Source of the DNA: Octopus sinensis
Taxonomy: Eukaryota
DNA: 64,000 nucleotides
Assembly: GCF_006345805.1 (NCBI RefSeq)
Contig: NC_043014.1
Span: 25,296,001 to 25,360,000 of the forward strand
Direction: 5' to 3'
Shown piece after piece: positions 2,473 to 36,150 of this stretch. The notes beneath the pieces are model-generated. The model was not told the DNA's origin and made no database searches. It saw only the letters and a program-made list of their open reading frames with translations. The first letter of the stretch is position 1. Each line of letters opens with the position of its first letter. The translations under genes were made by a program, and so were the position numbers.

Positions 2473-2551
2473 AAATATATGTATATATATATTTATTTAT
2501 ATATATACACATACATTCATATATGTGTGTGTGTGTGTATATATATATATA
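2420..2551. repeat. (TA)n/(TG)n compound microsatellite
   Basis: Directly visible dinucleotide runs. Confidence 0.95.
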
Positions 2552-2686
2552 CTGGGTCATCCCATAAATAATGCAATTTTTTTCAATTGCATGAACTAAA
2601 AGTCGGAGGATAACGGGATAAACTACCCGCATCAGTTTGCGATAAAAGCAGGCAGTAATTTTACCTTGTATTTACTCTTAACGCAA
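2552..2686 (+). mobile_element. 5' end (left TIR + 5' UTR) of mariner copy 1, separated from its transposase by inserted elements A and B
   Basis: Begins TA|CTGGGTCATCCCATAAATAATGCAATTTTTT, which is mariner-TIR-like. Ends in TTACTCTTAACGCAA(G)TTTTGAAG, a diverged duplicate of the sequence where the mariner resumes at 5447. The right TIR is not present for confirmation. Confidence 0.65.
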
Positions 2687-3785
2687 GTTTTGAAGAATTT
2701 TGTTTGTATTGCAGTTGTATTGTAGTTTAAATATTGTTGTACTGTTGTATGAATTGTTGTAGTGTTCGCTGAACACTTTGGATTTTGCTGCACTGTGTCA
2801 GTCTGGTTGTACTTTCCCTCCTCATAGAAAAATGGAAGACATCAGATTTTCAGATAGCAGCTACACTGAGGTGTCTGGTTCTGAGCAGTCGGACATTTTC
2901 ATGGACCATTAGGAAGGGATAAAAATCAAGGCTTGATAGAAGCTTCGCAGAGGTGGCAAAAATATTGGAGTTCAATATGGAAAGGAATGAGTGGAAGGAC
3001 TATTCAAAAATGATGAAAAGGGAAGGAACTAATGTGAAAGTGACAGCTCCAATGGAAATTATCATTAATAGGATGGAATGTACGGTAGTATACAAAAGAC
3101 ATTCAGTAGACACAGGAAGAATTAACAAAATAATAATGAATCAAGTGGAGAAAGCACTACTGCCAGTCTGGAAGGAAATCAAATATCTAACCAGAGGGAG
3201 TAAATTTGGAACAGTTAAAGTTTGATTTAAGGATGCAACCATAGCAAATTTGAACGCGGCAACAATCTTAAAAACTGATGAAGTGGTGATGTTGCCGATA
3301 TATCGTGGAAGGTGTGCCATAAGGGTCAATGTAGAGGGAATCCCCCAGATGTCAACGTGGCCTGGATAGCAGCTGCTGTCTTGCTCAGCAATGAGGAAGA
3401 GATAGCGGTTCTCCAGGCCACTAAGACGGAAACAAGAAACTGGAAAGTGCAATCCCTAAACATAGTGATACAGAGGCCAAAGGAAATAATAGAAGAGTTG
3501 CTGGAAACAATAGCATTTGATGGTGTAATAATGGTAGTTAAAGTAGAAGGCAGGATTGCCAAATGCTACAAGTGTGGCTAGAAAGGCCTTATTAGGGCAA
3601 ACTGCCCTCTACAAGACAAAAAGGGAAAGGAAGAACTGGCAAGAGAAAAGGAAAGTATACACCACCACCAACATCAGAAACAGAAGAAGAATGCAGAACT
3701 GATGGCAAATGGGTGACACCAAGCAAGAAAAGGAAAAGAAAAAGGAGGAAACCAGGTAAAATATTGTGGGCAATAAAAAATCAAT
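2687..3785 (+). mobile_element. Element A: ORF1-only Tx1-clade retroelement, internally deleted (~1.1 kb)
   Basis: Degraded ORF1 (2953-3225, 3312-3581) with YLTRGSKFGTV and a gag-type knuckle VEGRIAKCYKCG*KGLIRANC. No EN or RT. Ends GTGGGCAATAAAAAA. Bounded by target-motif copies at 2672-2686 and 3786-3800. Confidence 0.8.
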
Positions 3786-3800
3786 TTATTCTTAGCGCAA
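3786..3800 (+). repeat. Target-site motif copy (TTATTCTTAGCGCAA) between elements A and B
   Basis: 14/15 match to TTATTCTTAGTGCAA. Confidence 0.9.
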
Positions 3801-5446
3801 GTCATAGAGTTCGTATCGTGCTAGTGTGTTTACTGATTGTGTGAGTAGTTGACTGGCCTGTGCTGCTTTGCAGTGGTTTTCTGGTTGTGCTTTCTCTCTG
3901 CCTTGAGGAGGGTCAGCAATGTCAACAGTAAGAAACATGTTCTATTCGGACCTTAGTGGGTCCGAATTGTCCTCTTCAGAGGAAGAACTCATATGAGCAG
4001 TTGGTAGAATGGACAAGCGCTTAAGGAAGAAAAGTTTTGCAGAAGTGATAGAAGTCACAAAAAAGGAGGTGGATCTGACAAACATGCAAAAATATGAGAA
4101 AATGGCATGTAGGATAGGTGGTGACGTTAAGCTGTCACCATCACAGAAAGTATTGGAAGAAATGGATAAGAAAACAGTAATATATAAGGTGCACTCAGTG
4201 GAAGAAAGGAAAATTGAAAATGTTGAGGCAGAAATAATAGAAAAGGCATTGTGCTCCGTCTGGCAAGACATAACATATCTTGCCAGAGGAAGCAGATACG
4301 GAACATTTGTGGTTCATTTCAAGTCAGAAGGAAAAGCAAAAGAACACGCAGTAAACACAGTAAAGTTGGATAAAGTGGTCTTTCTTATCTTGGAAGAAGG
4401 ACTTCCAGGATTAGGGTGGAGGGAATCCCACCAGAAATAAATGTGGCTTGAGTTGCGGCGGCTGTTTTTCTAGGAAGTAAAGAAGAAATAGCCGTCCTCC
4501 AAGCCACGAAAACAGAAAATTCAGTATGGAAAGGCCAAACATTGGACCTGATCATACAGGGCACTGCAGAAACACTGGAAAATGTGGTGGAAACAGTGAC
4601 CATTGAAGATGTAGTGTTGAGAATGTGGATGGAGGGTAAAACCTCTCATTGCTTTAACGGTGGCCAAAAGGTCACATTAGAACACACTGCTCTCTACAGA
4701 AGCAGAGAAGTCAGGAGAAAGTTAGAAAGGAGCCGGAGGAGGTACAAGAGGAAGAAATGAGAAATGAAGAACTGTGGATGGTAGCTGAAGGAAGAAAAAA
4801 GAAGGACACAGTGAAGTAGAACCCCAAACCATACCCACACCATCCATACCCTCTCTGACCTCCCTCCCCCACAGACACCAAACCCACCTATTCCCCTCCA
4901 ACACAAAGCAAAAGAAAAAAGAAACACAAGCACACAAGGAACAACAAACTCCCCCTCCCACTGAAAATTGTTTTACGTCTATGATTGTTGAAGGTGTGGA
5001 CAAGGAACTGCTCAATAAGATAACAAAATGGAAGAATGCAAGATTTGTCCATGTCAAAGGATGGACAAACATTGATGGATGGCAGTCATGTGTTCTGGTG
5101 TCCGAAAGCCAAAAAAATGAAATATTGAAATTCAAGAGGGGTTATAAGTGTTGGAAGGTGAATTGTAAGTTAAAGACGATACCAAACAATATAAAGTACA
5201 AGGAACTGACCGAGAAATATGATATAGACATTTTAAAGTACTTGGAATTTAAAAAATAAAAGGAAGCAAGTGAGGCTGCTTGTGGTGGGGCAAGTAGCTC
5301 ATTTTCATTGTATCATTCATTTATATCATACATTTTAATTTTTAATTTTTTTAATTTTTATTATTTTTTTTCGTTTTTATATGTCCCCACATGGTTTTGT
5401 GTTGTCCCTTCTATGTTGGCCCGTTGTGGGTAATAAAAAAATCAAT
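3801..5446 (+). mobile_element. Element B: ORF1-only Tx1-clade retroelement (~1.65 kb) with conserved C-terminal ~95-aa module
   Basis: ORF1 pieces 4009-4440 (YLARGSRYGTFVVHF) and 4542-4760 (knuckle remnant HCFNGGQK/GHIRTHC), then ORF 4981-5259, a T-rich 3' UTR and GTGGGTAATAAAAAAA. No EN or RT. Confidence 0.85.
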
Positions 5447-6045
5447 TTATTCTTAGTGCAAATTTTGAAGTGTGCAGTTCGATTTCAACAATTATTTTTT
5501 CAAAGCTAAAATGAAAGTGACAAAGGAGCATATTTTGCTTTATGAGTTCAATAAATGCACCAACGCAATGGAAAGTGCGAGGAATATTAAGGCGGTATAT
5601 GGGGATCAGACAATAAGCGTAAGCTAGTGTCAATGGTGGTTCCAGAAATTCTGAGCTGGAAACTACAGCCTAGAAGACATGCCTCGTCCTGGAAGATCTG
5701 CAGAACCCGACGAGGACGTTCTGCAAACCATGGTGGAACAAAGTGTTGAGGAACTAGCAGTGAAGCTTGGATTTGGTCGTTCAATCTTTCAGCAACACCT
5801 GCATGCCATCGGAAAAGTCAGCAAATTCAATCGATGGGTTGCTCACAAACTTTCCAAGTCTAATTGCATGCAGAGAGTGAATGTGTGCTCTTCTTTGCTG
5901 TTACATCTCATGAATGAACCATTTTTGGACTGAATAGTAAATGGTGACGAGAAATACGATCTCTATGAAAATGTCAAGCACCAATGACAATGGTTAGGGA
6001 AAGGAGAAACACTAGCTCCCCAGGCTAAAGAAGGTCTTCACCAGT
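5447..6045 (+). mobile_element. Mariner copy 1, transposase N-terminal half (pseudogene), 3'-truncated
   Basis: ATG at 5511 (MKVTKEH...). HTH region EDMPRPGRS, then WVAHKL, IVNGDEKYDLYEN and PQAKEGLH. Begins with the target motif at 5447-5461. Confidence 0.9.
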
Positions 6046-9719: not shown

Positions 9720-9736
9720 TGTATGTGTGTGTATGT

Positions 9737-9795
<59 letters not shown>

Positions 9796-9804
9796 AATAT
9801 ATAT

Positions 9805-11810: not shown

Positions 11811-12839
11811 GTTAACAAATTGTTTTATCATCATACCCTATTCCTTTAACATTAGACGACATATGAAAACAGTTTAAATTCTGATTACAATTCTTTTTCT
11901 ATTTATTACATGTTAACTTGAAATTTTCTCCTGATCTAAGAACACACCTTCGTATTAACTTAAGAAATTTGTTATAGGAAGAATGAAAGGAGACAAAATG
12001 AGAGAGAACAAGAGGAAATGAAGAGAGTAAGAAAATCAGAAATGCCCAGGAAAGAAAGAGTGAAGAAAAGAAACACAGAATGGAAGGAAGAGAGAGAGAG
12101 AGAGATGAAGAAAAAAGACAGGTGAGAAAACGCAAGTCAGTATGTGAGGGATGTAGGTTGGAAGAAGAAGGAATAATAAAATATACTTATGACTGGAATG
12201 GGGTAGGGGAAATGATGTGGGTAGTGTTCATAATTTTGTGCACAGACTTGAATTTTTTCGATACTTCTGAAAGATAGTATCAAATTTGGAAGTGATTTGG
12301 TTAACATAAGATTATTTGCTGTGAATAGATATATGATAACTTTATTATCACACCAACTCTTCCAGAATGCATTTTTAATAAGGAACTTTCATGTCTATAA
12401 GATAATGGCCGTGCAGTTAAAGGTTTTGCTTCGCAATCATATGGTACTTTGGGTAAATAAGGGTCTTTACCATTGTCTTGGGTTAGTTTGGTCTTGAAGT
12501 ATGTTTGCAAATCTTTTCGTGTATCGTAGATTTAATATGTTGCTCAGTTTATCACTACCAGCTGTCCTTTAAGTACTTACAACAAAGTCCATTCTGTGTC
12601 AAGAATTCGGATCAAGTCTCACATCTGAGGGCATGATCTTTGCCCATCAATCAGAGAAGCTATATGAGAACGGCCATGGATGCTGCCGTTTTCCTCTAAG
12701 TCATAAACTTTTTGCTCACAATGCGACACACTTTAAAGATATAGAAGATTAAATTACTTTCCATATATTGAGGTCGAAAACAAAAACGAAACTGTAATAT
12801 TGCAATACAATTACTATAATTACATTATCATCATCACCA

Positions 12840-13578: not shown

Positions 13579-15170
13579 GTCAATACGAAGAGCATGTTTC
13601 AATTGTATGATATTTTATTGGTAGAACGATATTTCAACAGTAAGTCTGTCCGTCAAGTTCAAACTAAGAAGTGATAAAAATTCAAAATTATAGAAATTTA
13701 AATGTAAAGTATGAACGAGAGCAACCAGCATCCACACGTTGATGGAATGACATCATCAGTTTTTAAGTTACAATTTTATAACAGGCGAAAAGAAAAAGAC
13801 AGAAAAAAAAGCAGAAAAAAGAAGACAACAGAAAAAAAAGAGGAAAGAAAAAGGAGAGAAAGAAGAATAATCAAACAGTTTTGTATAAATTTGATGATAT
13901 TCTCCTGTCATCTTATTCATTCCTCCAGGGTGTGATGTTAATAACCTGCAAACATATTTCTCCTCATACATTCTGAGAAGTGAAAGTGAAGCAGATACAG
14001 AATATTTTTTGAGAATATGCACTTTCAAGTCTTCTTCAAAATTGCAACCACTTGAAACAAAATGTTCAGCAAGTTCTGTCAAACTGCTGTTATTGTGCCT
14101 GACATCAAATCTGTGCCCATTAAACCTTTTGTTTAATTGTTCTGTTGTACAACCAACATAAAGTAAGTTGTGTTTCATGCATTCTCCAGCATACACCAAA
14201 TGGGAATCTTTACATGTTCCACCTTCTGTATAAATCATAACATTTCTGTAATGATTTCTGATGGAATTCACTTCACTCATGTTGTTGCACAATGAACAGG
14301 GCTTACCTCTCTTGCAGCTGTTCTTTAAGGTACAGCGTGTAGATATTCCAATGTTAGTTTTCTTCGAGTCATATAGAGGTCAATAATTCTCTTATATTCT
14401 TATCCTGCCTAAAGGCTACACTAGACGACTGAGGAAATATCTGTTCGAAGCGAGGATATTTTTTCGCCACATGCTGGTAACTTTCATGCAACACTTTTGA
14501 AATGCCAGCGAAATGTCGGTGCCAGTTAATCACTAAAGGAATTCTGTCATCCATTTTATTGTGTTTCCTAAAATTATGTGTGAAGGTTTGACTATCTTTG
14601 CTGATCTTAACTATTTCATTTGCTATATCCTTTAATCGTGATTCACTGTAACCGCTTTTGACATAATGATATACAAAAGCATTTGTCTGTCTCCAGTAAT
14701 CCCCTATGTCAGTACAAATCCATTTTATCCTCAAAAATTGGGATTTCGGATTTGACCGAATAAGATGATATGGATGATTGGATTGGTGGTGGAGATAAAT
14801 GTGGGATGATGTAGGCTTGCAAAATAACTCTGTTACTATTCTGCCTCCAGAAAATTTGACTTTTGTGTCCAAAAATTCAATGCTAGTTTTTGAAAAATTA
14901 GATGTAAAGTTTAAAGCCATAGTTTTTAGCATAACAGCCGCAGAAATGCAAGAAGTCCATTAAACTATCCTCTGATCCTTCCCAGATAAAAGATATGTGA
15001 TCAATGAACCGTAACCAGAGTATTGGTTCATAACTATGAAGGGATTTGAATGTCTTCAGTAACTGTGTCTCGAATTTCGTCATGAAGACATTAGCGAAAT
15101 TAACTGCCATGGGGGTACCCATGGCGCAACACTTCGTCTGGTGGTAAAATCTTTGTCTAAACTTTGGACA
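13579..15170 (-). mobile_element. Penelope-like element, 5'-truncated: RT C-terminal half + GIY-YIG endonuclease
   Basis: RT motifs AMGTPMAVNFANVFM and WLRFIDHISFIW (14898-15122). Thumb FLDTKV...LFCKPT...YLHHQSNHP (14369-14932). GIY-YIG LVYAGEC...LLYVGCT...RFNGHR...EEKY...GMN (13768-14292). Confidence 0.92.
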
Positions 15171-18100
15171 GAAGGGACATGTCTCTCCAGGTGTCGAGTT
15201 GCAAGCCCACTGATTTTTCTACGTTAATTTTTGCACCTGTCACCACTTCATATTCTTGTAGTGTGTCACCAATCAGATCTATATGCCTGTGGCTGGTCAC
15301 TATGGCATGACATCGTCAGCGTAAGCAGACACACTTCTCTCACATCCTAGATCATGTAGGACACCCCTCAAAACTTCTGCAGTAAAGGCTCAAAAGTACA
15401 TACGGAGGGCACCCTTGACGGACCGAATGCAAGAATCTGAATGGTTCCTGAACAACCGAGGAGATGCCGCTGTACAAAGCAGTGATTCAACCGCGGAAAA
15501 CTGGACCGAAGCCGGCTGCCTTGAGGACAGCTGCCAAGTATTGATGGTTGACTCTATAAAAGGCTTTAGATTGATCTAAATTGATTAGAGCCTCATCCAT
15601 GCCAGCTTCGTTATCTACCCTCTCTATGATGTAGCGCATAAGGTGGAGGTTGCCGTGAATAGTTCTGGTAGGGATGGCGCATGTTTGCGCCTCGCCAACT
15701 AGCTTGTCCACAACAAGCAACAACCTCTTAGCTAATACCTTGGCGAAAATCTTTAACTCTACATTAAGCAGAGTGATGAGCCTGAAATTTTCGATAACAT
15801 CCCTCTTGTTTGAGTCCTTTCTCAGCAATGCCACCGCCCCTCAACAAACAAAAGTGGGAATTCTTCCATTTTGTTGCCTGTTGCAGTAGACGTCTGCTAA
15901 GAGATCCGCAAACAAGTCTGGCATTGAAATATAAAGCTCGTAGGGCAGACCATCCAAACCTGGCAATCTGCCTCTTGTGCAGCTTTTCATCACTTCCTTA
16001 TCTCCACGGCTGTTATTGGCCTTTTGTGGCACTCCGCCTCGTTTGCCGAGAGTCATGGCAGGCCGTTCAGGTACACACCAAAAATCTGACCTGTTATTCA
16101 TCCTACCATTCATCCCGAACAGTCGAGCAAAGTGCTGCTGAAAAGCCGCATACACTTGTTTTGGTTTGAACACCTCGTGTTCATTCTGGTCCAGCAAAGA
16201 CCAAATGGTGGCATTATTGCTACTTTTTGCCTCCGCCATGTGGGCCCATCGTGACACTTTCATTCCCTCCCCACTTAGTGAACATGGCTTAGCTCTGACA
16301 ACGCAACCTTCATGTTTGGCGTAAATTGGTCGAGGGCCAGCTTCACCGCCAGAACGTCGGTTGCGATGCCTGTCCTAAGCGCCTCATCTAACTTTCTAAC
16401 TAAATCTCCCTCTATTATATTTCATTCTATCGCTAATGCCTTGCTAAACCTGATTGATTGTTCTCTAATTACCCTTTTAAGAGCAAACCACCAGTTGTTG
16501 ATGGTTTCCCCTGTCAACGCCCGCTTAACTAATTTGCTAATCCGGTCTGTGTAAGCTTGACACACCGGTAACGATGTCTTCAGCTTCCAGTAACTGGGAC
16601 CCTTTCTATGAAGCCTGTCTAAATCAACTATACAGATCACAAATTTGTAGTCTGTGTAGCTGACCATGTGAAATTGTGGACACCCTGCACTATCCTTGTC
16701 TGCTAGCCGATAAAATACTCTATCTAAATACAATCTAGATGACACAGTGCGGTTTGTCCAAGTCCACATTGGTACATTCGGGTAATCTGTCAGACAACTG
16801 AAAACATATTAGCAGGTTTTTGAGGCTTTTGCATTCCACTATCTTATCAGATACTCCCACGCAATCGAAAAGTCCATCTAAGGCAGCGTTCCAAATCCCC
16901 TACTAACATTAATCCCTGAGACGTTCCCAAGAAAACCTTTAGATGCTTGAAGTAATCAGACAGCCCTGCCCCTGTTGGAGCATAGGCAGGCACCAGTCTG
17001 ATAACACCGACATCATTGCTCTTAATCACCATATTAAATTTAGAACGGAGAAGAGCTCTACTTATCACTGCTGTCTGGTATGGTGGTTCCCTTGGTCTTT
17101 TGTACTGGTGTTTCCATGAGGTTTTTATATATTCTTTTTGTGAAAGTCTTTTGGAGCGACCCAACAGCTTCCGGGGATATTGTTTTTATGGTGTTGTAAT
17201 TTTGTTGTCATTTAAAAAATTTGTATGTGTGGTGGTGGTGAGTTGTAATCTGGTGCCATCGGGTAGGTTAATTGAGTCAGGGATTGAATTTAAGGCTTCT
17301 TGTTCAATTTGAACAAGGAGCTCCGACCCCTGACCCATCCAATTTTGTTGGTGCAATTTATGCCCCTCCAGTATTGTGGCGGTGTCCTCTATATCAAAGA
17401 GGACAGCTGCCACCAGCCAACATATATTTATTTCAGGGGGCACCGCCCCAGTCTTAATTTTGTCACGCATCAACTAAGGTATGTCGACACGGGCAGTAAT
17501 TCCTCTGTTTTTAGGGGCACAGTGGAATGCTATCTTTCCCCCTGCTCAGTTGAAAAATGCACTTCCATCGTGCCGAAGCGTTTTCCTCTTGTCACATAGG
17601 TTTTGTTCGTCCAAATTGGTTTGAGGGCCATTTCTAACTGTTTTTGGGTAGCTTGTTCTACTCTTTTCTTCTTGATGTTTAAAACTTTCCTTCCTTAACC
17701 CCTTTGCATTTATATTTCATTTGTTGTTAAATTCAACATTTCTTTTGTCTGCTTTGCCGCTGAGGTGAAACCGTTGCCTCTGGATTTGTAGTTGTTCATG
17801 TTTGTGGTGGTGGTGTCAGTGTCATTTTTTCTTCTTTTCTCTCTTCCTCCATCAGGAACAATAGTGGTGATTTTTTTAGTTTTCTTTGTTGTTGTTGATT
17901 GTGGTGGCAGTGTTGGTGCTGCTGTGCATGCTAGTGCTGTGAAGAGAGGGAAATCAACAATGTAATGGCTGTTTCAACAGCCAGAATCACTCTCCTTCAT
18001 GTCAGACTCCATATTGTTTTTTGTGTGAAAATGAAAAACACAGTTTTGGTAAAAAAAAAAGGACCAATCATCCAAAATACGACCCTAAAAGGGGGAACTT

Positions 18101-18200
18101 TTAACAAAACAAATCCTTCTACACATCAAAAGGGGTTCAGAAAATAACAGTTAAATAAAACAGTCAAAAACCTTCAATAACACTACAAAAATTCCAACTT
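15171..18200 (-). mobile_element. Element G: L1/Tx1-clade LINE (ORF1 + partial EN + RT), 3'-truncated
   Basis: ORF1 (KRFGTMEVHF...LPVSTYLS, 17186-17599). EN remnants AYAPT...LMLVGD and YTDYKFV. RT motifs PGLDGLPYELY, NFRLITLLNVELKIFAKVLAKRL, LINLDQSKAF and AYADDV (~15310-15325). Confidence 0.9.
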
Positions 18201-18888
18201 ATGGATCTCCTTTGTTAGCATTTGGTTTGGGCTTAAATGTTCAAAGTGGACTAAACCTTTCACATATCATCAAACAGATAACAACATCTTACGTGGGTGA
18301 AGACCTTCTTTAGCCTGGGGTTCCAGTGTTTCTCCTTTCCCTATCCATTGTTGAAGGTGCTTGACATTTTTATAGAGAACCCATTTCTCGTCACCAGTCA
18401 CAATTCGGTCCAAAAAAGGTTTATTTGTGAGACGTGACAGCAAAGAAGGGCACACATTCACTCTCTGTGCGCGATTAGACTCAGAAAGTTTGTGAGGAAC
18501 CCATTGATCGAATTTTCTGACTTTTCTGATGGCACGAAGGTGTCGATGAATGGTTGAATGACCAATTCCAAGCGTCTGTGCTAGATCCTCAACAGTTACG
18601 ATGGGAATGTCCTCGTCGAGTTCTACAGATTTTTCAGGACGAGGCTTGTCTTCTAGGCTGTAGTTTCTGGTTCAGAATTTCTGCAACCACTGTTGACACT
18701 GGCTTACGCTTATTGTCTGATCCCCATACACTGCATTAATATTCCTTGCACTTTCCATTGTGTTGTTGTCTTTATTGAACTCATAAAGCAAAATATGCCG
18801 AATATGCTCCTTTGTCACTTTCATTATAGCTTTGAAAAAATAACTGTTGAAATCGAACTGGGCTCTTCAAAATTTGCACTAAGAATAA
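18201..18888 (-). mobile_element. Mariner copy 2 (same family as 5447-6045), transposase N-terminal half
   Basis: ATG at 18824 (MKVTKEHIRHILLYE), then IVTGDEKWVLYKN and PQAKEGLHPRKMLLSV. Begins at the target motif 18874-18888. Roughly 85-90% identical to copy 1 by eye. Confidence 0.92.
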
Positions 18889-20549
18889 GAAATTTTTTAA
18901 TCACCCACAAGGGGCAAACATAGAGGGGACAACACAAAACCATGTGGCGATACAGAACACGTAAAAAATAAAATTTAAATAAAATTTAAAATATGGTAAC
19001 ATGAAAATAAGCTGCCTGCCCCACCTCAAGTAGCAACACTTACTTCCTTCTGAATCCCGAGTCCTTCAAAATGTCCAATCCTAATTTTTCTCTCAGTTCC
19101 TCATATCCTACTTCTGCTGGTATCCTTTTTAGGTTTGCATCAGTCTTCCAAAACTTATAACCTTTTTTATATTTTGCAATCACTTCCTTCTGGCTCTGAG
19201 ACACCAGCACACACATGTGCCAACCCACAACATTAGTATATCCTTCCACATCCACAAATTTTACTGTCTTCCACCTTGTTACCTCGTTTATTAGTTCCTT
19301 GTCTACATCCTCTGTTAACACACATACATAGCTATTTTCATGGTGGGGTGGGATTTTGTGTATCTTGTGATGTCTGTTCCTCTCTTTTTTTTTTTACATT
19401 TTGAATGAAGGGAATCACTTATTCCCTTCATTCTGTGATTTCTGTGGGGAGAGGTTATGAGTGGGGTGGGGATGGCTTGATTTCCACATTACATTGTCCT
19501 TTCTTCCTCTTTTTCCTTCTTCATAAAGCATAATATGCCGAATATGCTCCTTTGTCACTTTCATTATAGCTTTGAAAAAATAACTGTTGAAATTGAACTG
19601 TCCATAATTCTTCCTCTTTCCTTTCTTCCATCTGTACCTCCTCTCACTTCTTCTCCAACCCTTTATCCATTTTTTCCAGACTATGCTTCTGCAGAGGGCA
19701 GTGTGCTCTAATGTAGCACTTTTGGCCACATTTAAAACAGCGAGGGATTCTGCCCTCCACTCACACTTTGAAGATTATATCTCCTATGGTCACTGTCTCC
19801 GCCAAATCTTCCAAGGATTCTACTTTAGCCTGAACAATAAGTTCTAATGTTTTTCCTTTCCACATCACCTCCTCCTCACTTCCAAGGAGGACAGCCGCTG
19901 CAACCCAAGCCACATCTATGTCTAGCGAGATTCTCTCTACCCTCATCTTGGATGTCCTCCTTCCAAGATACATGGATAGAAGGACCACTTTATTTGACTT
20001 CACTGTATTTACAGCCAGCCTCCTTGCTACTTCCTTCATCTTGTACTGGACCACCACCATCCCATCTTTGCTTCCTCTTGCCAAAAACACAATATCCTTA
20101 GATACCACACACAACGCTTTCTCAATTGTTTTGGCTTCTACTTGATCTACCCTTTTCTGTTCTACTGAATAAACTTTATATACAATGGTTCTTTTCATCA
20201 TGTCCTCCATAACTCTCTGTAGAGGCAACAATTTGACATCCCCACCTACTTTATGTGCCATTTTTTTTTATGTTCTTCCATTTTAGACAAGTCTATTTCA
20301 TTCCTTTTTAACTCCGTTACCTCAGCAAAGCTTTTTTTCCCCAAGACATCTGTCCATTCTGTTTACTGCCTTTATTAATTCCTCTTCTGAAGTGGACAAT
20401 TCCAACTCGCTAAGGTCCGAATAGAACATTTTTTTCATTAGCCATCGCTCCCTCTTGAAACAGAAGGAAAGCACAACAGGTTAACCGCTGCAAAGCAGCA
20501 CAAAAATCAGCACTTCGATACAACTCAATACATGTTCAAAAAATACGAC
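18889..20549 (-). mobile_element. Element C: ORF1-only Tx1-clade retroelement (~1.66 kb), same family as B
   Basis: ORF1 19761-20261 (FLARGSKDGMVVVQY), knuckle CFKCGQKCYIRAHC, C-terminal module 19040-19345 and 3' tail CCCCTTGTGGG. Contains an 80-bp mariner insert at 19521-19600. Confidence 0.85.
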
Positions 20550-20583
20550 TTGTACTAAGAATAAGGACTTGCACTAAGAATAA
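20550..20583 (-). repeat. Two tandem copies of the target motif (20550-20564 and 20569-20583)
   Basis: GACTTGTACTAAGAATAAG-GACTTGCACTAAGAATAAG: 19-bp period, 1 mismatch. Confidence 0.95.
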
Positions 20584-22106
20584 GATGATTTTTTATTGCC
20601 CACAAGGGGCCAACACAGATGGGACAACAAAAACACATGTGGGGACATATAACACACAAAAAAATAAAAAATAAAAAAACAATTCAATTATGATAATATT
20701 AATGATTCATGAAAATGAGTAAATGAAAATGGGCTGCTAGCCCCACGTCTAGCAACTTCACTTCTTTTTAAGTCCTGATACTTTTAGAACATCCAGATTA
20801 AAATTTTCTTGTAGCTCCTTGTACCCTATTCTTGCCAGTATCCTTTTTATATCAATGCCCATCTTCCAACACTTATATCCCCTTTTATATTTAACAATTA
20901 CATCCCTTTGAACTTGTGACACCAACAGACACATGTCCTAACCCACTACACTTGCTTGTCCTTCCATATCAACAAATTTTGCCGTTCTCCAACCAGTCAC
21001 CTCATTGATCAGTTCCTCCAGTGCATCTTTCGTTAAAACGCATACATACCCTGTTTCACTGGGGAGGGGATTTTTTTGTATTTTGTGTCTGTTTCTCTTC
21101 TTTTTCCTTTTTATTTTGTAAAGGAGGGTAATGGGTGGGTTTGGTGTCTGTAGGGAGAGGATGGGGATGGATTGGGGTTCCATTTTGTACTGACCTTTTT
21201 TTTCCTTATCTCTGCCAATGTTCATACTTCCTCTCTCTCTTTTTCCTCTATTCACCCCTCTTGTTTCTTTTTAGACTTTTCCTCTATCTTATCCGTATTG
21301 TTGAAGGAAGTGTGCTTTAATGTGGCCTTTTTGGCCACATTTATAACACCAAGGTATCCTGCCCTCCACCCATACACTCAAAGTCACCTCTCCTACTGTC
21401 ACTGTTTCGGCTAAACTTTCCAAAGTTTCAGTGTCTGCCTGAACCACGAGTTCTACTTTCTTCCCTTTCCATTTTGCTTTCTCAGTTTCTGAAGCTTGTA
21501 GAACAACCACCTCCATGTTTCCATATAGGACAAGGTGCGTGGGCTATAGTACCACTTTATTTGTCTTTATTGTGATTCCTGCCTGTCTCCTTGCTATTTC
21601 TTCTGACCTGTATTAGACAACTACTGTCCCAAATCAGTTACTTCTCTACATGAACACAATATTTTTGTGTACTGCATTCAACGCCTTTTCTATTATTTCC
21701 ACTTCCACTTGAACTATCTTTTCCTCTTCCACTGCATACACTTTGTAGATGATGGTTTTCCTTGCCATGTCCTCCATAATCCTCTCTGGTGGTGATAACT
21801 TCACATCACTGCCCACTCTGCTTGCCATCGTTTGGTGTACCTTGACATTTACAATGGTTATTTCTTTTCTGTTTATCTGTCATCTCTGCAAAACTTCTTT
21901 TTTAACAAACACTTGTCCAACTTGTTCGCAGCTTCAATTAATTCCTCCTCCAAAGAGGGTATTCCTTTTAGCCATGGCTATCTCTTGATAAAATTGAGAG
22001 AAAGCACAACTTGACACCGCTGCCAATGGAGCACAAAACAATTCAAATAACAATAATTCGATTAATGGTAATCACTAATTTAAACTTCAACTCACCAAAC
22101 GACAAC
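20584..22106 (-). mobile_element. Element D: ORF1-only Tx1-clade retroelement (~1.52 kb), B/C family
   Basis: ORF1 21646-21828 and 21289-21516 (VEGRIPWCYKCGQKGHIKAH), C-terminal module 20758-21060, tail TTGGCCCCTTGTGGGCAATAAAAAA. Confidence 0.85.
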
Positions 22107-22121
22107 TTGTACTAAGAATAA
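22107..22121 (-). repeat. Target-site motif copy between D and E
   Basis: TTATTCTTAGTACAA on the minus strand. Confidence 0.9.
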
Positions 22122-23810
22122 GATTATTTTTTTATTGCCCACAAGGGGCCAACATAGAGGGGATAAACATACATGCAGGGACAATTAACACATGAAAAAT
22201 GAATAAAATGAAATTTTACAATGAAGTTGAAATGGTCATCCCGGCCCTGCTCCTGGATGATTGCGTGATTTATTTCAAACAAAGAGTCTCTAACAGTTCT
22301 TTAAAAATAATCTCAATTTACCATTTTATGTCACTTTTAATGTCATCATAATTCACCACTGGGGTGCTGGGTTTAATACTCACCTCGGCCCCAGTAGATT
22401 TACATCTGAAGGAAAAGCTTCTTTCTGAGTTCTATATTTTCCTTCCTCCATCAGAATACATCTTATATCCTTATTATATCCCTTTGAAAGATTCACCCTA
22501 ATGATCCTTTTCATTTTCGCTATTTTCTTCTCCAGATTTTGAGTTGTATGATAAGTCACTAAAAAAATTTTGTTTCTCTGTACATCTTGTGTGTCTGCGT
22601 GCTGTGTCTGTGTTTCTGTGCTTTTATGTTTCTGTAACTCTGTTATCAGGTATCTGTCTGTCTCTATTTCCATGTGTTAGTATGTCTGTGTGTTTATGTA
22701 TCTGTGAGTCTGTATGTTTGTGTGACTGTAAGTCTATGTTTGCTTGGTGCTACTGTTCTGCTTGTGGCATTTTTCTTCAGTGATCCCAAGGGCATACTGC
22801 TTCTTCTTGTCATTATTGGTTGGTCCAATTCCTCCTGTACTTTATGTTTCTTCTGTTGTTGCTCCGTTTTAGGTGGTGAACTCCTCCTCTCTCTCTCTTC
22901 CTTTGTTTTGGTCTCCATAAACTCTGTGTTCTGTTCCACTTCCATTACGCCTTCTTGTATTTCTATTTCTGTGGTTTCCATCGTTTTTTGTGGACACCTT
23001 CTAATGTGCCCCTTCTCTCCACATTCAGAACACGTCAGAGGTCTCCCCTCTAACATTACATTTAGTTTGTCTTCATTGGGCAGCTCCAATGTTTCTGGTA
23101 TATCTTCGTACTCTTTTTGATTCACCATAAAAATTATCTCTACCTCAATCCCCCCAACAATTTGCTTGTTGGGTTCGGTTTATCATTATTATTTCCACCT
23201 TCTTGTTGTCTCTTTTCTCTCTTGTGGTGAAACTTGCTGCTGTTATCCATTCTGGATCGATTCTAGGTGGGATCCTACCCACCCTAATTCTGGTAACTCG
23301 TTTACCCAGGTAAGTGGGCAGGAGTGTCCATTTTTCTCCCTGTAGTACCTTAGTGGAATGTCTTTTTGCCTCCTCTTCTGAGACAAAGGTAACCACCACT
23401 GAAGTGTTATGCTTTCCTTTAATTTTTCCAGACATTTGCCCACCTCCCCCTGCATTGCATTCTTCAGCTTCTTACTTTTTTTTGAAAAAGTCCTATAAAT
23501 TATCACTGCTTTCCATCTTCACCTTGTCTTCCTCTGGTGGGGTCAACTTTGTGTTTGACCCCTCCCTCTTTACCATATATTGATATTTCCAAAGCAGGTC
23601 TAAATTACAATGCAGTTCATTCTGTTTCAGCAATCCTGGGATGACAGAACCCTGACTTCCCGTTGCTGCCGCATAGCTCTTCGTTTTGCTCATCCATCAC
23701 AGGCCACCAAATAAAGATGGCGCCACACACAAAAAACTGTTGCTAAGCAGCACAACACACTCCTCAGCACAAACCAATCCTCAGTATAAAACCATCCTCA
23801 CAAAACAAAC
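22122..23810 (-). mobile_element. Element E: ORF1-only Tx1-clade retroelement (~1.69 kb), different ORF1 lineage but same 3' tail
   Basis: ORF1 pieces 23493-23693, 23145-23435 (LLPTYLGKRVTRIRVGRIP) and 22694-23128 (LEGRPLTCSECGEKGHIRRCP). No EN or RT. Tail CTATGTTGGCCCCTTGTGGGCAATAAAAAA. Confidence 0.85.
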
Positions 23811-23825
23811 TTACACTAAGAATAA
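23811..23825 (-). repeat. Target-site motif copy between E and F
   Basis: TTATTCTTAGTGTAA on the minus strand. Confidence 0.9.
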
Positions 23826-25545
23826 GGTGATTTTTTATTTCCCACTAGGGGGACAACATAAAATGGGACAGCACAGTCTGATTGGGGGGTCAGATTAACG
23901 AATGATATTTACACAAAGATGAATTTTAAAATGTTTAACAAATATAAAAATGGATGATAACACAGAACGGAAGACACTACCAATGGAGTGGGTAGGTGGG
24001 CTCAACTCTGACCCCATGAGCCCCGCCTTACCACTGATGCCTGAGACTCGCGTTGCATCGCATTCAAGAGGTACCATTCATACACAACATTCGTACAACA
24101 TTCATCCATCGATTGTCAAACATTTTCGCAGTCAGGCATTTTCTCTCTAGCCCTATTTTCCTTTTCAGGTGAAAGGTGAAATAATTCACCGATTCAGGGC
24201 AAGAGATGAAGATGCCTCACTCTAACCCTTTCAGCCTCGTCTTCCAAATCACCTCTCTTGCAATTGCTACTACAATGAGAAAACAATTCTTACCTTCTTT
24301 TGAACGGAAATCAGGCTGGTCAGTTTTTAGTATAGATTCAGTTGATAGCTGTACTCTTCCTGCACTTGATAACAGATGTTCAGCATAAACCCACACGTCT
24401 GACACCTCTAAACACTGAACAATAGCGTGTGGGACAGTTTCCCTATCCCGCTCGCATCTTGGACAGGTCGAAGGGCAGTGGCCACCATGCCTTGTGAGCT
24501 TGTCCCAAACCAGTAAGGCTCTTTGGTAACACTACCATGCCAGAGACTTCTGAAAGTTGTCCAGGGTCTTCAGCTTGAATGTACATTGGAACAGACTGGC
24601 CAGCTGATTATCGTCGAGATCTAGGGTTTCCCGTAAGGTATCGTCATATTCCGTCTCTACAAGCCCTCTATAAAAGAATGTGGTGGAACCACCACCACAG
24701 GCATTGCCCGAGCGATGGAATAGCAGGTGTGTCTTTCGACACTCCATAAACCATGTACCCAATTTCGATCTATGATAGAACCAGGTTTCCCATCCACCGA
24801 AACTAGTGAACTTGGGAAACATCTGTTTCGCTAGTGAAGACCACACCCATTCACCACCCAGGTAGAGCTACAGATGCCTCAACCTCAGCACATGTCTGCA
24901 CATCAACAGCCAAGGCATCCCTAGCCCACCCTTTAACAGTTGTTGGCAGCAAATAGAGTGTCTCACAAGCGGTTTCGAGCCCTTCCACAAGAAGTGAAAT
25001 AGCTGTCTTTCCAGCTCGATCAACCACAAATCAGGGCAAGGAACAACGGTTAGGCAGTAAGTGATGACTGATATGATGAACGCATTGGTTACCTTCACCC
25101 TCCCTTTCAGGGATAGCCACCACCAAGACAAGGTCTTGACTATGTGGGTCACCCTGCTCGATACCTCAGCCTAGTTCTTCTCTATTTGGAGGTCTGGTCT
25201 GAACCAAACTCCTAGCAACTTAATTGGACCCTCCATTCAACGTCTCACAACACTGTCAGGGGGCATCGACTTGCCTCTCCAGGTTCCAAGCTGCAAGCCG
25301 ACTGACTTTTCATGATTAACTTTTGCTCCTGCTACCGTCCTGTAAATCTTAATGGCCTTGCCTACCCTCTGTAGATGATCCATGTCGGTTACGATGATGA
25401 TGTCATCTACGTCAGCTGAAACCGACTTTCCACAACCTGGCTGTCTCAGGATGCCACTCAATTTTTGCAGTAATGGCTCAAAAGCCATCACATACAAAAG
25501 CGAGGAGAGCGGACACCCTCAATGAACCGAGTATTCCAAGTAGAA
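23826..25545 (-). mobile_element. Element F: 3' half of an ORF2-coding Tx1-clade LINE, 5'-truncated at the inverted-repeat element
   Basis: RT C-terminus (GCPLS.LLYVMAFEP, VDDIII, GAKVNHEKSVGL), GGLGMP, LDNFQKSLAW and the C-terminal ORF2 region. 3' tail GTCCCCCTAGTGGGAAATAAAAAA abuts the target motif. Confidence 0.9.
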
Positions 25546-27615
25546 CAGCCCCTAGATGTGACATGATGTAGTTTATATATACTAAAAAGCTGGTGGTGAA
25601 ATTATATGATATAGTAGTGCAATCCATCAGTGCTAACGAAATTTAGTTAACCAATAGAATTTCAATGCTTTTAGCATTTGTAGGTGCAGTTACTTCCCCT
25701 GACAGTGGCTGCCTATATTAGTTGGACAATAGAGGGCATATGCAAAATTAAGGTTCAGAGATTCACTTCCTCTTTTGGCATCTTGACGTCGTAGAGCAAA
25801 AATGTGATCTAGATGGCTCTCTCACACCACACACCAGCTAGCAGACAGGAGGCAATGCACAGGAGAAGATCATAGCCTCCACACATCAAACCATTTCCAT
25901 TCATCATTCAGCTTGTATATATATGTGTTGGCCACATTAAAGGTATTTAAGTTACCACCTTGTTCCATGTATTTCTTTATACTGTGTTCCTGTCAAATGA
26001 TATTACAGCCTTCTGAAGGGAGTCATGTTTAGATGGCTCCACAACCATGATACAAATAGACCACTACTCCATCTAAACATCTGTTGTGTTCACGAAATGA
26101 TTTTTGGGACAGTTACCACAGCCTATGGTGTTATAAACAGCACATCCAGGCTAAGTTGGATGTGTTAATTCATTTTTGTTACAAAGGCTGCTTCTCTCGC
26201 TAATTTTAGCTAATCTATACACAGCGTACCAGCTTTTCACAACATCACTGGGTGTTCGGCTAGCACAATTCTATGTCGGTTTGATTGTTATTCGGTGCCG
26301 TTCACCTGAACTACTGAGTCGATGTTGTCATAAATCTGAATGATCCAGCTGTAACATCAATTCCCCGTTTACTAGACGTGAATAAAGTATTTTATTATGT
26401 CGGCTACGGTTGAGTGATTCCAACCTGCAACAGCAGGGGATTGTACAGAGCTGTGCCAATATAAAGTAGGCTAAATATAGTAATATTAGTATAGTAATAA
26501 TAATGATAAAAATAATAATAATCATCCATGGATGGAATTTATTAATATTTTAAAATATTTATAAATTCCATCCATGGATTTGTAGCGCTTAGTGAAATAC
26601 ATTATCTCTCTTTGAGAGATATCATACAAATGCGGATGTGGCGTATAACAGCCGGCCTTCCACTGCTTGGGCCCAGTTGTGTCCGCTACTCTGATTGGTT
26701 GGTTTTGGTGCAGTTTTAACTCTTGCTTTGAATTGACAACAAATGCTAAAAACCATTGAAATTCTATCGGTCAACTAAATTTCGTTAGCACCGGCAGATG
26801 GCACTGCTGTACCATTGTATTAATTTCATTGTATTGTGGATAATCAACAGTAGAAAGCCAAGCACCGAATAACAATCAAACCGACATAGAATCGTGCTAG
26901 CCGAACACCCAGTGATGTTGTGAAAAGCTGGTACGCTGTGTATAGATTAACTAAAATTAGCGAGAGAAGCAGCCTTTGTAACAAAAATGAATTAACACAT
27001 CCAACTTAGCCTGGATGTGCTGTTTATAACACCATAGGCTGTGGTAACTGTCCCAAAAATCATTTCGTGAACACAACAGATGTTTAGATGGAGTAGTGGT
27101 CTATTTGTATCATGGTTGTGGAGCCATCTAAACATGACTCCCTTCAGAAGGCTGTAATATCATTTGACAGGAACACAGTATAAAGAAATACATGGAACAA
27201 GGTGGTAACTTTAAATACCTTTAATGTGGCCAACACATATATATACAAGCTGAATGATGAATGGGAATGGTTTGATGTGTGGAGGCTATGATCTTCTCCT
27301 GTGCATTGCCTCCTGTCTGCTAGCTGGTGTGTGGTGTGAGAGAGCCATCTAGATCACATTTTTGCTCTACGACGTCAAGATGCCAAAAGAGGAAGTGAAT
27401 CTCTGAACCTTAATTTTGCATATGCCCTCTATTGTCCAACTAATATGGGCAGCCACTGTCAGGGGAAGTAACTGCACCTACAAATGCTAAAAGCATTGAA
27501 ATTCTATTGGTTAACTAAATTTCGTTAGCACTGATGGATTGCACTACTATATCATATAATTTCACCACCAGCTTTTTAGTATATATAAACTACATCATGT
27601 CACATCTAGGGGCTG
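25546..27615. mobile_element. 2.07-kb non-coding element with ~750-bp near-perfect inverted arms (foldback-like element or local palindrome)
   Basis: Arm 25546-26298 (753 bp) is the reverse complement of 26862-27615 (754 bp), with only about 3 substitutions and one 1-bp indel seen. Spacer 563 bp. Termini CAGCCCCTAG...CTAGGGGCTG. No TSD and no ORF. The repeat structure is certain; its identity as a transposon is not. Confidence 0.75.
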
Positions 27616-28228
27616 ATTTGCCCCTAGATACATTACGTAAAGACAGCCTTCAAGAAACCAGTTACTTGTTACTTAACAGCAGCACTAGAATCTAGATAAA
27701 TCAGAAGCACAAAGTTCTACTTGGAATACTCGTTTCAAAAGAAGAAATTTAAAGGGTGAAAGCAAAGTTAACTTCGATGGGATCTGAACTCAGAACACAA
27801 AATGTTTTGCTTATACTCCAGCAGCTTACCCTGGATTTTCTTCAGCTATGGTTTTCAAAAATTTCAAAAATTTTGACATGTCCAGAGACTTAAAATATCA
27901 TTTTCATAGTAGAATGCATATTTCTTTCCACTTTCATTGCTGGAGAGCCCATTTTGAATTCATACTTCATACTGTCTCTGACTGAATTGGATCTGATCTA
28001 AACTTCATTTTAAAAAGAATAAAATCTATTCGAATTTAACCATTATGGCATAAAGTAATCTGCAAAGAAAACAACCTTTTAGCATGTAAAAATTAATGCT
28101 TATTTTACTATTTTTATTGAAAAAGTACCCTCAAAGTGATTATATAAAAAATGCAACAGGTCTTACGAGCTAGTATTTTATATATATACATGTATATAAA
28201 GACAATTACACACCTGAGTCCTTTATCC

Positions 28229-28350: not shown

Positions 28351-28949
28351 ATATTCATATACAGTAATGTTCTTTGGTGCCATGACTGCTCTTTCACACA
28401 ACCATGGTACCTGACTCTGAAAAATACTACCAATCTTTTGTTATTGGTTTTAATTAGCAGTATTCTCAGAAACCTCTTATTCTGCTTTGTATCATTTCTG
28501 TTTTCTATTCTGTTTTGTTTAGTAAGCAACAACCTCTAAGCACCATGATAGCTGTATAATCCTTATTACTGCTGTTGGTTATGAATTATTATTGCTTCTA
28601 TATTGATATTTTCATAAATTTATATAATCTCACCTATGCCATTTAGGTAATATTATCTTCCACTCTCGTTATTGTCACCACACTCTGAATCCCTAATTAA
28701 GTGTCTTCTCTTTCTATTCAGTTTTAAAGTTTTTGGTAAACTCTTATTAAATGCTTGATTGCCGAATGTACCCATTATCTTAATTTCATTTCCAACTCAG
28801 ATCTGAGTGTAATAAAGCTGTCACAAAATAAAATAAAACAAAATAAATCTGATAGAATGAATAGCAGGGAGATATGCATATATTGTTAACTCAAACATTT
28901 TCCTACAGCGTGATTATGAACAAGACTGCTTGGCTCTTTTTCTCTCTCC

Positions 28950-31900
28950 CACCACTAACATACACACTGACTGCTCTGAAGCAGTAAATCTTTTGAATAA
29001 ATGGATAAAACAGGGCAGAGTGGGTGGATGGTATAGCAATATGAATAGAATTAACAAAATAAAAGTTTTCCGTGACAATTATGTTATAACAAGATGAAAT
29101 GTTGGGCATGGAGACCCCACAAGCCACGACCTAGCACTGCTCTCACACAGAAGACCAAGGTGTTCCGTTCAAGTTGGCCATATTCTAACTTAACAATCGT
29201 GTCACTGCATCCATCTAGTTTTAAACTCTCTCTCTCTCCTTACTTTTCTTTTTAGAAGAAACGAGAAATATTTAATTAAACCGAAACCATCTTAATTCCT
29301 TTCACTCTCATCAGCCATACGACCTCTTTGGCTACAGCTACCGAGCAGAAAAAGGTTGCCTACCTTTCCTAACTAAGGGAAGGAGGTAGAACAATCTTAA
29401 TGATGGACTCAGTTCATAACTGTACTCCTCCTTGATACAACAGCAGCTGTTCTACGTAAACCCAAAGATCTGAAATCAACAGACACTGTACGATAGTGTG
29501 CAGAATAGTTTCATTGCTCTGCTTGCATCTCAGACATGTCTGTGTGTCTGCATATACCTAAAGTGTCTATTGCAAACAAGCAAAGCTCCTCGATAGCACT
29601 GTGAGGCCAGGGATTTCTGATAGTTATCCATGGGCGCTGGCCCAAACATCCTCCAGAACAGACTGGTGAGTTGACCATCATCGAGGCCTAGAATTTCCTC
29701 CACAGCATCATCACACTTACCAGCCCCTAACTCTCTATAAAATGACGAGGTGGAATCCTCACCGCTTGCATTGCCTGTCCAGCAGAGAAGTCAGAGAGCC
29801 TGACAGCACTCTGCTTGCCAAGCACCCAGCCCAGGTCTATGCTTGATCCATGAGTTCAATTTGCTAAAAGAGTCGAACTGTGGGAAGATCAGTTTCATGA
29901 AGGGTGACCATACCTGTTCGCCATCTATGTAGAGCCGGAGATGTCTCAACCTTAGTGAATGTCTGCGCATTTTAGCCCTCCATTTAGCAGTAGTTGACAG
30001 CAAATAGAGCATCTGACAAGTGGACTCCTGTCTCTCCACAAAAAATTTGAAAAGCAGGCACTCCAGCATGACCAGACATGAATCTGGGCAAGGTGCGATG
30101 GTTAGGCGGTAGATGATGATGGATGTGATTGTCACCTCTGCCCTCCTTTCAGGGACAGCTTCCTCTCAGCCCATTTCTTGGTGAGATTGACCACTCTGCT
30201 CGTAACCTCACCCCAGTTTCTTTCTATTTGGAGGTCTGGACCAAACCGGACCCCGAGCAATTTCACCAGGCCACATGATCAATGTCCTACAACATTGTTA
30301 GGTGGTATCAACCTGACTCTCCAGGTGCTGAGCTGCAGGCTGACTGACTTATCACGGTTTATTTTTGCCCCTGATACTGCTTCGTACTCCCTAATGGCAT
30401 CACCTACTAGAATCAGGTGTCTGTCAGGATACAATGACAGTGATGTCGTCTGCATATGCTGGCATGGATCTCCCACACCCCAGATCACATGGGATTCCCC
30501 TCAAGGTCTCCAATTTCTGCAGTAATGGCTCAAGGGCCAGAACATACAGAAGGGAGGGTAGGGGACATCCTTGGCAAACTGAATGCACGATACTAATGGC
30601 TCTGAAAGATAACCATTCATTTGAACTACTACTTTAATGTTACTATATAATGCAGTGATCCAACTGCAGAAGGCTGGGCCAAACCTGGCCACTTCGAGGA
30701 CTGCTACCAGATAGTGATGGTCAACCCTATCAAATGCTTTAGACTGATCTAAATGTATCAGTGCCCCTCCCAGGAATATTAACCACCTTGTCTATGGTGT
30801 AGCATATGAGGTGGAGTTTGTCGTGGATTGTTCTGGATGGACTGGCGCATATTTGTGCTTTCCCAACCAGTTTGTCTGCAACAAATGCCAACCTCTTGCC
30901 TAGCACCTTGGCCAAAATCTTCAGCTCTGCATTAAACAGAGTGATGGGCCTAAAGTTATCTATAACGTCCCCATTGTTTGGGTCCTTTCTTAGCAGCACC
31001 ATGGTCCCCTGGCTCACAGAGCTAGGAATACTCCTATTCTGTTGCCTGTTGGTGTAGATATTTGCCAGTAGGTTCCCAAACAAGTGTGTCATATTACAAT
31101 AGAATTTGTAGGGCAGACCACCTAGACCCAGCAATTTTCTCCCAATGCAGCCCGATAGGCTTCTTCCACCTCCACAGCTGTGATCAACCCTTCACAGCAC
31201 TCTGCCTCCTGCACTGAGAGTCACAGTAGACCAATCAGGAAGTCCAAGAAGTCCATCCAGCGATCCAGCTCACCTCTCATCCTGAATAACCGAGCGAAAT
31301 GCTGGTGAAGGACCTTACACATCTTTGTTAACTGTACATCCATTTTGCTCAACCAAAGATCATATGGTGGCTTTGTTGCCACGTTGGTTCTCTGCCATAC
31401 AGGCCCATTTCGCGGCATTGATTCCCTCTTGTCTTATAGCACGTAACTTAGCTCTGACAATGCAACCTTTTTGCTTGACATTGAGGTGTTGGTCAAGGGC
31501 CAATCTCACTGCCAGTATGTTAGAAGCATTGTCTGATTTTAGTGCCTCTTCTAGTGTGCAAGCTAATTCCCATTCTATTCTGCTTTTTTCTAATGCTAAA
31601 ACTTTGCTATATCTACGTAACTCAAATTTGATGGCTCTTTTTAGGGCATACCACCAGTTGTTATTGATGATGGCTGTTAGTGCCCTTTTCACTAATTCAC
31701 TAACCTGGTCACTGTAGGCATTGCATGCCAGGAGTGATATGTTTAGCTTCCAGTAACCAAGGCCCAGTCTACAAAATCTAAGTCAAGCTTACAGATCACA
31801 AACTTGTGATCCATATAACTGACGATCTAAAATTGTGGACATCTAACACTAGATTTACCACCTAACTTAATGAATTCTTTATCTAAGTAAGATCTGGTAG

Positions 31901-36137: not shown

Positions 36138-36150
36138 GTACATATATATA
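36003..36150. repeat. (TA)n/(TATG)n/(TG)n microsatellite
   Basis: Directly visible. Confidence 0.95.

Follow-up and report, generated by a model that had tools for sequence, protein, structure and literature searches.

Why do retroelements stand head to tail, each at the same nucleotide, in front of a mariner transposase gene, and why does this occur twice in one stretch of DNA? The stretch is a 64,000-nt segment of Octopus sinensis contig NC_043014.1 (forward-strand positions 25,296,001 to 25,360,000; hereafter the window). It is repeat-dense animal DNA of about 38% G+C, and its mariner and long interspersed element (LINE) proteins have their closest relatives in octopods (Octopus sinensis, O. 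bimaculoides and Argonauta hians). Array 2, on the minus strand from 25545 to 18201, reads F, motif, E, motif, D, two motif copies, C, and a last motif running into the mariner. Array 1 is built in the same way on the plus strand, with elements A and B and the same mariner junction. F is a 5'-truncated LINE, and A to E contain only the first open reading frame (ORF1) of such elements. We consider it probable that a LINE of the L1 group, most likely of the Tx1 clade, and ORF1-only partners mobilised by it in trans target one site in the mariner 5' untranslated region (UTR), and that each insertion regenerates this site.

The motif recurs at every junction. An exact 24-mer, TTATTCTTAGTGCAAATTTTGAAG, was found at two places in the window (5447-5470 on the plus strand and 18865-18888 on the minus strand), against zero expected. 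With at most one mismatch, the 16-mer core TTATTCTTAGTRCAAR has five matches on the minus strand (23825-23810, 22121-22106, 20583-20568, 20564-20549, 18888-18873) and two on the plus strand (3786-3801, 5447-5462); 2672-2687 holds a further, diverged copy. Every element tail is followed by TTATTCTTAGTRCAAGT, and in both arrays the last copy enters the mariner 49 nt before the transposase ATG. The first-pass annotation of array 2 had given the element order, the motif coordinates, the ATG positions (18824 and 5511) and the equal 49-nt spacing, all of which match our sequence search. The target reads (TC/AT)TTATTCTTAGTGCAAGT and is located in the 5' UTR, about 125 nt from the mariner 5' end. All six tail-bearing elements in the window (6/6, two arrays) sit at the identical nucleotide of this target and in the same orientation as the mariner, and each insertion separates the mariner 5' arm from the transposase gene.

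The mariner was identified by Pfam matches to HTH_48 (Mos1-type helix-turn-helix) and Transposase_1. We compared it with nine external copies from one O. sinensis chromosome locus (L001), five JGI contigs and three Logan contigs (together L002-L005, L109-L111 and L112). Most of these are internally deleted copies of about 570 bp with both inverted repeats, and both repeats were seen wherever a copy is complete. None of the nine carries an element at TTATTCTTAGTGCAAGTTTTGAAGAG, about 125 nt from the 5' inverted repeat. The site is uninterrupted in L001, L002, L003, L005, L109-L111 and L112, and in L004 it is split by a 13-nt filler. Array 1 retains a mariner 5' arm with its inverted repeat, which aligns continuously with L001-L005 and L112, all empty; the 3' ends of these carry its first ~40 nt in inverted form. 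The arm ends in a diverged motif copy extending to TTTTGAAGA. Because empty sites exist and array 1 keeps the 5' arm, the motif is native mariner target DNA, duplicated as a target-site duplication of about 19 bp. The possibility that the motif is confined to the element termini, which the first-pass annotation had named as a check on its reading, is refuted by its counterparts in the empty mariners and the 5' arm. The filler in L004 (5928-5960) lies within the target (TTATTCTTA tatatatagttcc TATTTTAGTGCAAG), with the motif partly repeated, and may have been left by repair where the site was cleaved. Mariner-like fragments of other families, on the plus strand at 8837-9644, 55902-56846 and 60527-60760, have no motif within three mismatches.

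All six elements, A to F, end in the same tail of about 65 nt, over which A to E are 77-85% identical to F. The tail pattern CCCYTNGTGGGNRATWAAAAA gave five matches in the window against 0.18 expected, each directly before a motif copy; the tail of A, which is internally deleted, was spotted by eye before the motif copy at 3786. This shared tail, together with the same junction, bears out the earlier suggestion that autonomous-type and ORF1-only families use one target. The 3' end contains a hairpin, GCCC-CTTGT-GGGC, followed by AATAAAAAATCA. In eight sequences, including relatives from other species, the 4-bp stem is paired in every one (8/8, 100%), with compensatory changes in two of the four stem pairs: F has U-A in place of G-C, and two relatives of F, L105 (A. 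hians) and L106 (JGI), have G-C in place of C-G. Only 1 of 500 shuffles reached this level of pairing, and slid registers pair at 25-53%. Some LINEs recognise their own RNA by a hairpin at its 3' end, which their dependants then share; the hairpin here, a very short helix, fits a putative 3' recognition element for the LINE and its dependants. An Rfam search of the window returned zero families. A short interspersed element (SINE) in the O. sinensis locus L001 (2260-2490) has a similar tail (GCCCCTTCTGGGCAATAAAGAAATAAG) and a flank that is not mariner. SINE copies in the window (e.g., 10553-11159) were considered as tail carriers and rejected, as their tail differs; the similarity is limited to the single O. 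sinensis copy.

Elements A to E contain neither an endonuclease nor a reverse transcriptase (RT); they encode an ORF1 with homology to the ORF1s of three further LINEs of the window, G, H and I. They represent at least three families of about 1.5-1.7 kb, namely A, B/C/D and E. B, C and D share the 5' UTR, ORF1, a C-terminal domain and the 3' UTR, with overall nucleotide identities of 68% (B-C), 67% (C-D) and 62% (B-D). A has 53-56% identity with the other elements and E has 48-50%, near the random level of 45% obtained from shuffled sequence. The reading frames of the present ORF1-only copies are broken. The C-terminal domain of about 95 residues (B, 4972-5256, plus strand; C, 19043-19330, and D, 20761-21048, minus strand) shows 51-60% amino-acid identity and a ratio of nonsynonymous to synonymous substitution (dN/dS) of 0.13-0.30 with saturated dS. 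Because of these values, we judge from the sequences that the ORF1-only elements diverged as separate functioning families before landing in the mariner. The domain had no match in Pfam, and the ORF1s of the LINEs in the window lack it. Its AlphaFold model is poor (mean predicted local distance difference test score 48), with a beta-alpha-beta-like pattern. A search for ORF1 homologues gave a single match, P0071.

F has RVT_1 and zf-RVT domains in Pfam, its endonuclease having been lost with the 5' truncation, and is 46-56% identical in amino acids to the ORF2 proteins of cephalopod LINEs. The A. hians locus L105 holds a nearly intact full-length relative (6869-12666, 49% amino-acid identity), with an ORF1 carrying a CCHC knuckle, an apurinic/apyrimidinic (AP)-type endonuclease (Exo_endo_phos), RVT_1 and zf-RVT. 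This element is flanked by a 17-bp target-site duplication, TATTTTTAAAATTTGTA; it also has a duplicated stretch within its 3' UTR. Compared with solved structures, it matches human L1 ORF2p best (7e-43), with R2 a distant second choice (1e-22). This places the F lineage in the L1 group, within which the L1 and Tx1 clades fall. L1-Tx1 is the sole L1-group lineage among the recently active LINEs listed for Octopus vulgaris (PMC13282606), a pointer that makes the Tx1 label plausible. A cluster look-up of the LINE relatives for informative names, such as 'Tx1', gave none.

The junctions retain details of the insertion process. Motif copies before B, C and D end at one point, the copy before E may be up to 3 nt longer, and the copy before A reaches 27 nt; together with the 17-bp duplication in Argonauta, these ends indicate a fixed first nick and a second nick about 19 nt downstream at a variable position. 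Between D and C the motif stands twice, in a clean 19+19-nt tandem when the two preceding bases are counted; this resembles the trace of a staggered cut repaired with little or no inserted DNA. Array 1 has AT as the two nucleotides before TTATTC, and so does its own 5' arm; array 2 has TC or CC there, which matches the family consensus. In array 1 the two distal copies have a derived C at motif position 11 in common, and the 5' junction of A has eight extra mariner nucleotides, TTTGAAGA. New insertions may enter the distal copy, to which the mariner 5' arm is still attached, or the 5' motif may partly arrive on the RNA; the sample is tiny.

We propose the following mechanism. The AP-type endonuclease of the LINE would nick the bottom strand at the site's 5' edge, and reverse transcription would start on the element RNA, recognised through the conserved 3' hairpin and the AAUAAAAAAUCA after it. 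Since they have the same tail as the LINE, the ORF1-only elements would be copied in trans. After a cut in the second strand about 19 nt downstream, the site would be duplicated on both sides of the insert and stay available. Repeated hits would then build head-to-tail arrays, because each insertion regenerates the site on both flanks. An abundant and mostly dead mariner family might offer such retroelements a harmless landing place, and the mariners hit might be inactivated, as the first-pass annotation had suggested.

Several observations weigh against targeting of the mariner site as we propose it. Within the window the targeting is well supported, but the specificity is shown for seven events only, in two arrays that are separated by 12 kb. 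All nine external mariners sampled are empty (0/9 occupied), so occupancy is low. The nature of the F-family endonuclease is deduced from the L105 relative, and the assignment to Tx1 rather than L1 is no more than plausible. Both mariner-proximal motif copies read GCAAAT, whereas GCAAGT stands in the other six copies and in the family consensus, a split that simple local target duplication does not predict. A mariner 5' arm was sought upstream of F in array 2 and was not found; an inverted duplication is located there instead. Sequences with this type of tail occupy other sites as well: the Argonauta locus has four tail-bearing copies with four unrelated 3' flanks, three of them within 3 kb of the full-length element, L106 (about 52% amino-acid identity) ends directly in (ATT)n, and the O. 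sinensis SINE lies in non-mariner DNA. Because relatives with such a tail occupy these sites, mariner targeting is a trait of the sub-lineage seen here and not of the whole lineage.

The relatives raise an explanation in which the endonuclease needs only a short AT-rich motif (approximately TTATTNTTA, (TTA)n-like) and the arrays are a local hot spot. The (ATT)n end of L106 and the Argonauta target, which begins TATTTTTAA, each have one mismatch to TTATTCTTA over the first 8-9 positions, and the different flanks of the four Argonauta copies agree with such a relaxed preference. However, the window contains 126 TTATTNTTA sites, mostly in (TTA)n microsatellites, and only the seven TTATTCTTAG copies, all in the arrays, are occupied; the other 119, about nine (TTA)n tracts included, are empty. 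The same nucleotide was hit in two mariners by different families, and the duplicated stretch is at least 19 nt long. We therefore regard a purely short-motif preference as improbable. The resemblance of the relatives' targets (TTATTATTA, TATTTTTAA) to the start of the mariner site makes it a reasonable idea that the specificity shifted from a simple AT-rich or (TTA)n target. Recombination, segmental duplication of a composite block and an assembly artefact were also considered as origins of the arrays, given that these are inverted with respect to each other in a very repeat-dense region, only 12 kb apart, with a 99.3% identical inverted duplication abutting F. The two mariners are about 87% identical (82-93% in 100-column blocks), but B and C are only about 66% identical (56-81% in 100-column blocks, mostly 60-75%). 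The identity switches at the conserved tail and jumps exactly at the junction, and neighbouring elements are 48-68% identical. A duplicated block would diverge evenly, and on this step we rejected arrays 1 and 2 as copies of one block. Because of it, the alignments lead us to conclude, as the first-pass annotation had done from the same contrast, that different families inserted at one and the same nucleotide of two mariner copies and that the arrays are independent events. The junctions are also nucleotide-precise, and empty sites exist elsewhere, which leaves an origin by recombination or artefact very improbable.

A third explanation leaves the targeting unchanged and concerns only the origin of the 5' motif copies, which could be carried on RNA transcribed from upstream mariner sequence at the source locus of the elements, the cDNA (complementary DNA) end pairing with the target. 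The base at motif position 16, G in all internal and upstream copies and A in both local mariners, agrees with such a leader, as do the extra nucleotides at the 5' junction of A and the C shared by the distal copies of array 1. The doubled motif could similarly be a local copy plus an uncollapsed leader, and read-in transcription from a mariner has been proposed for SINEU-2B (Kojima 2015, PMC4494074). However, the dinucleotide before the motif follows the local mariner (AT versus TC), the doubled motif is an exact tandem, and the Argonauta relative has an ordinary duplication at a unique site. With so small a sample, we consider carriage on the RNA rather unlikely but worth keeping in view, and favour local duplication of the mariner target.

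How does this system compare with known ones? The Tx1 clade is target-specific, with Tx1L in the piggyBac derivative Tx1D, Keno in U2 genes, and Kibi and Koshi in microsatellites (PMC4494074). Mariner targeting, which the first-pass annotation took to be undescribed, has already been reported: crocodilian Tx1-Mar LINEs and SINEU SINEs target Mariner-N4_AMi, and their tandem insertions sandwich a duplication of about 16 bp (Kojima 2015, PMC4494074). In the same study, a family is called target-specific when more than 20% of its copies flank the target. As here, a LINE and its non-autonomous partners share defined sites in one mariner family and form tandems around a duplication. However, Tx1-Mar has a reptile host and uses sites at about 240 (antisense) and about 830, whereas the site here is in the 5' UTR, in sense orientation and in a cephalopod-like host. 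Similarly, the SINEU dependants are SINEs headed by small nuclear RNA sequence, whereas the dependants here are ORF1-coding elements of 1.5-1.7 kb. An origin independent of the crocodilian Tx1-Mar seems likely.

Other systems share single features with the arrays. Tx1-9_AMi inserts about 300 bp from the 5' end of Harbinger (PMC4494074), so that its target too is near the 5' end of a DNA transposon, of another superfamily and in another host. Xenopus Tx1L and Tx2L (cited in PMC4494074) are LINEs aimed at one site in the non-autonomous piggyBac elements Tx1D and Tx2D, and the composite was initially mistaken for a single element. The target superfamily of the Xenopus elements differs from mariner. 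They produce a short 4-bp duplication, as against about 19 bp here, and we know of no ORF1-only partners for them. Mammalian HAL1 ('half-L1') also encodes only the ORF1 protein and depends on the ORF2 protein of its parent LINE (Bao and Jurka 2010, as cited in PMC5753468). Unlike the elements here, HAL1 is dispersed and not site-specific, and B, C and D have in addition the conserved C-terminal domain. R1/R2-type LINEs likewise have a repeated and dispensable target, a precise 3' junction and possibly target-derived transcription, but their targets are ribosomal RNA or other host genes and not a transposon, and R2 uses a restriction-like endonuclease. In the literature searched (Repbase lay outside it), we found no such cephalopod system, no use of this site and no site-specific ORF1-only partners. 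The cephalopod-like host, the 5'-UTR site and the protein-coding ORF1-only partners are possibly new.

A broader reading, which we offer tentatively and at somewhat less than even probability, is that a cephalopod LINE lineage independently evolved strict specificity for about 19 bp of a mariner 5' UTR, maybe from (TTA)n-users, and supported a long-lived guild of ORF1-only elements sharing its hairpin and target. If this is true, three layers are present: a DNA transposon, a LINE parasitising it, and half-LINEs parasitising the LINE. The system would be an invertebrate addition to the short list of retrotransposons aiming at DNA transposons, and suggests that this habit arose more than once. 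With its ~19-bp target, relatives with other targets, and both empty and filled sites, it would be a compact system for studying how an AP-type endonuclease comes to recognise a long site. The question of why some LINE parasites keep ORF1 is touched by the ORF1-only partners, in which an extra domain is conserved. For annotation, the mariner, LINE and half-LINE parts of such composites should be recorded separately rather than as one repeat. The coordinates of the features are given in Table 1.

Table 1. Components of arrays 1 and 2, numbered from the first nucleotide of the window.
Feature	Positions	Strand	Basis
Array 1: mariner 5' arm with inverted terminal repeat and diverged upstream target copy (2670-2696)	2546..2696	+	alignment to L001-L005, L112
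Array 1: element A, ORF1-only; internal deletion takes the C-terminal region and most of the 3' UTR	2697..3783	+	
Array 1: target-site copy A/B, AT TTATTCTTAGCGCAAGT	3784..3802	+	
Array 1: element B, ORF1-only, B/C/D group	3803..5444	+	
Array 1: mariner body with target site, ATG 5511 and transposase residues 1 to ~188	5445..6042	+	
Array 2: element F, 5'-truncated LINE with C-terminal part of the RT, zf-RVT CCHC, 3' UTR and tail	23828..25545	-	Pfam, tail alignment
Array 2: target-site copy F/E, CC TTATTCTTAGTGTAAGT	23809..23827	-	
Array 2: element E, ORF1-only, with RNA-recognition-motif-like region and CCHC knuckle, own family	22124..23808	-	
Array 2: target-site copy E/D, TC TTATTCTTAGTACAAGT	22105..22123	-	
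Array 2: element D, ORF1-only, with 5' UTR, ORF1 with CCHC knuckle, conserved C-terminal domain and 3' UTR with tail	20586..22104	-	
Array 2: hairpin example in D	20598..20610	-	
Array 2: two adjoining 19-nt target-site copies, TCTTATTCTTAGTGCAAGT / CCTTATTCTTAGTACAAGT, zero nt between them	20548..20585	-	
Array 2: element C, ORF1-only, architecture as B and D	18891..20547	-	
Array 2: mariner with target site (18872-18890), 5' UTR, ATG 18824 and transposase residues 1-216	18201..18890	-	Pfam, tblastn, breakpoint

Further scans were made in other collections. When metagenome contigs were scanned with the tail alone, 100 matches came up, all of them random and none with the motif. Scans of viral contigs for the motif and of prokaryotic genome contigs for the motif and the junction yielded nothing.

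The distal end of array 2 is marked by a rearrangement. The RT homology of F ends at 25545, where its 5' end coincides with a 754-bp inverted duplication of 99.3% identity (25546-26298 versus 27615-26862) with a 563-bp spacer; 18 nt of the end of F recur inverted at 27715-27732, 100 bp past the far arm. The duplication has the appearance of a fold-back rearrangement, although an assembly artefact is possible. Since F stops exactly at it, a later rearrangement probably removed what lay upstream. Within array 2, an 80-bp stretch of the mariner (18781-18860, 5' UTR and first codons) has been copied into the ORF1 region of C (19521-19600) with 97.5% identity. This patch stands in place of about 10 nt of B, is flanked by TATG(G)A microhomology, and is a local event at or after insertion.

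Several other repeats adjoin the arrays. Upstream of array 1 on the plus strand is an unrelated LINE (1-2400) with a 444-residue open RT reading frame (625-1959, RVT_1 1.6e-31) and an internal 128-bp duplication (132-259 versus 549-676). It terminates right before the mariner 5' arm, with a (GAAAT)-like repeat and a (TA)n/(TG)n microsatellite. LINE G (L1/Tx1-like, with ORF1, endonuclease and RT; 15177-18200 and 13768-15122, minus strand) starts exactly at the break of the array 2 mariner, at transposase residue 216. The endonuclease fragments of G and H had no match in Pfam, being too decayed. G is interrupted by an element whose reading frame is a weak GIY-YIG match (E = 3e-4) and which may be Penelope-like. 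The decayed LINEs H and I (28900-33600 and 36150-39500, minus strand) and an ORF1 fragment at 43802-44146 (plus strand) have a homologous ORF1 without the conserved tail. H adjoins a Tc1-like transposase at 34125-35016 on the plus strand, with HTH_Tnp_Tc3_2 and DDE_3 domains.

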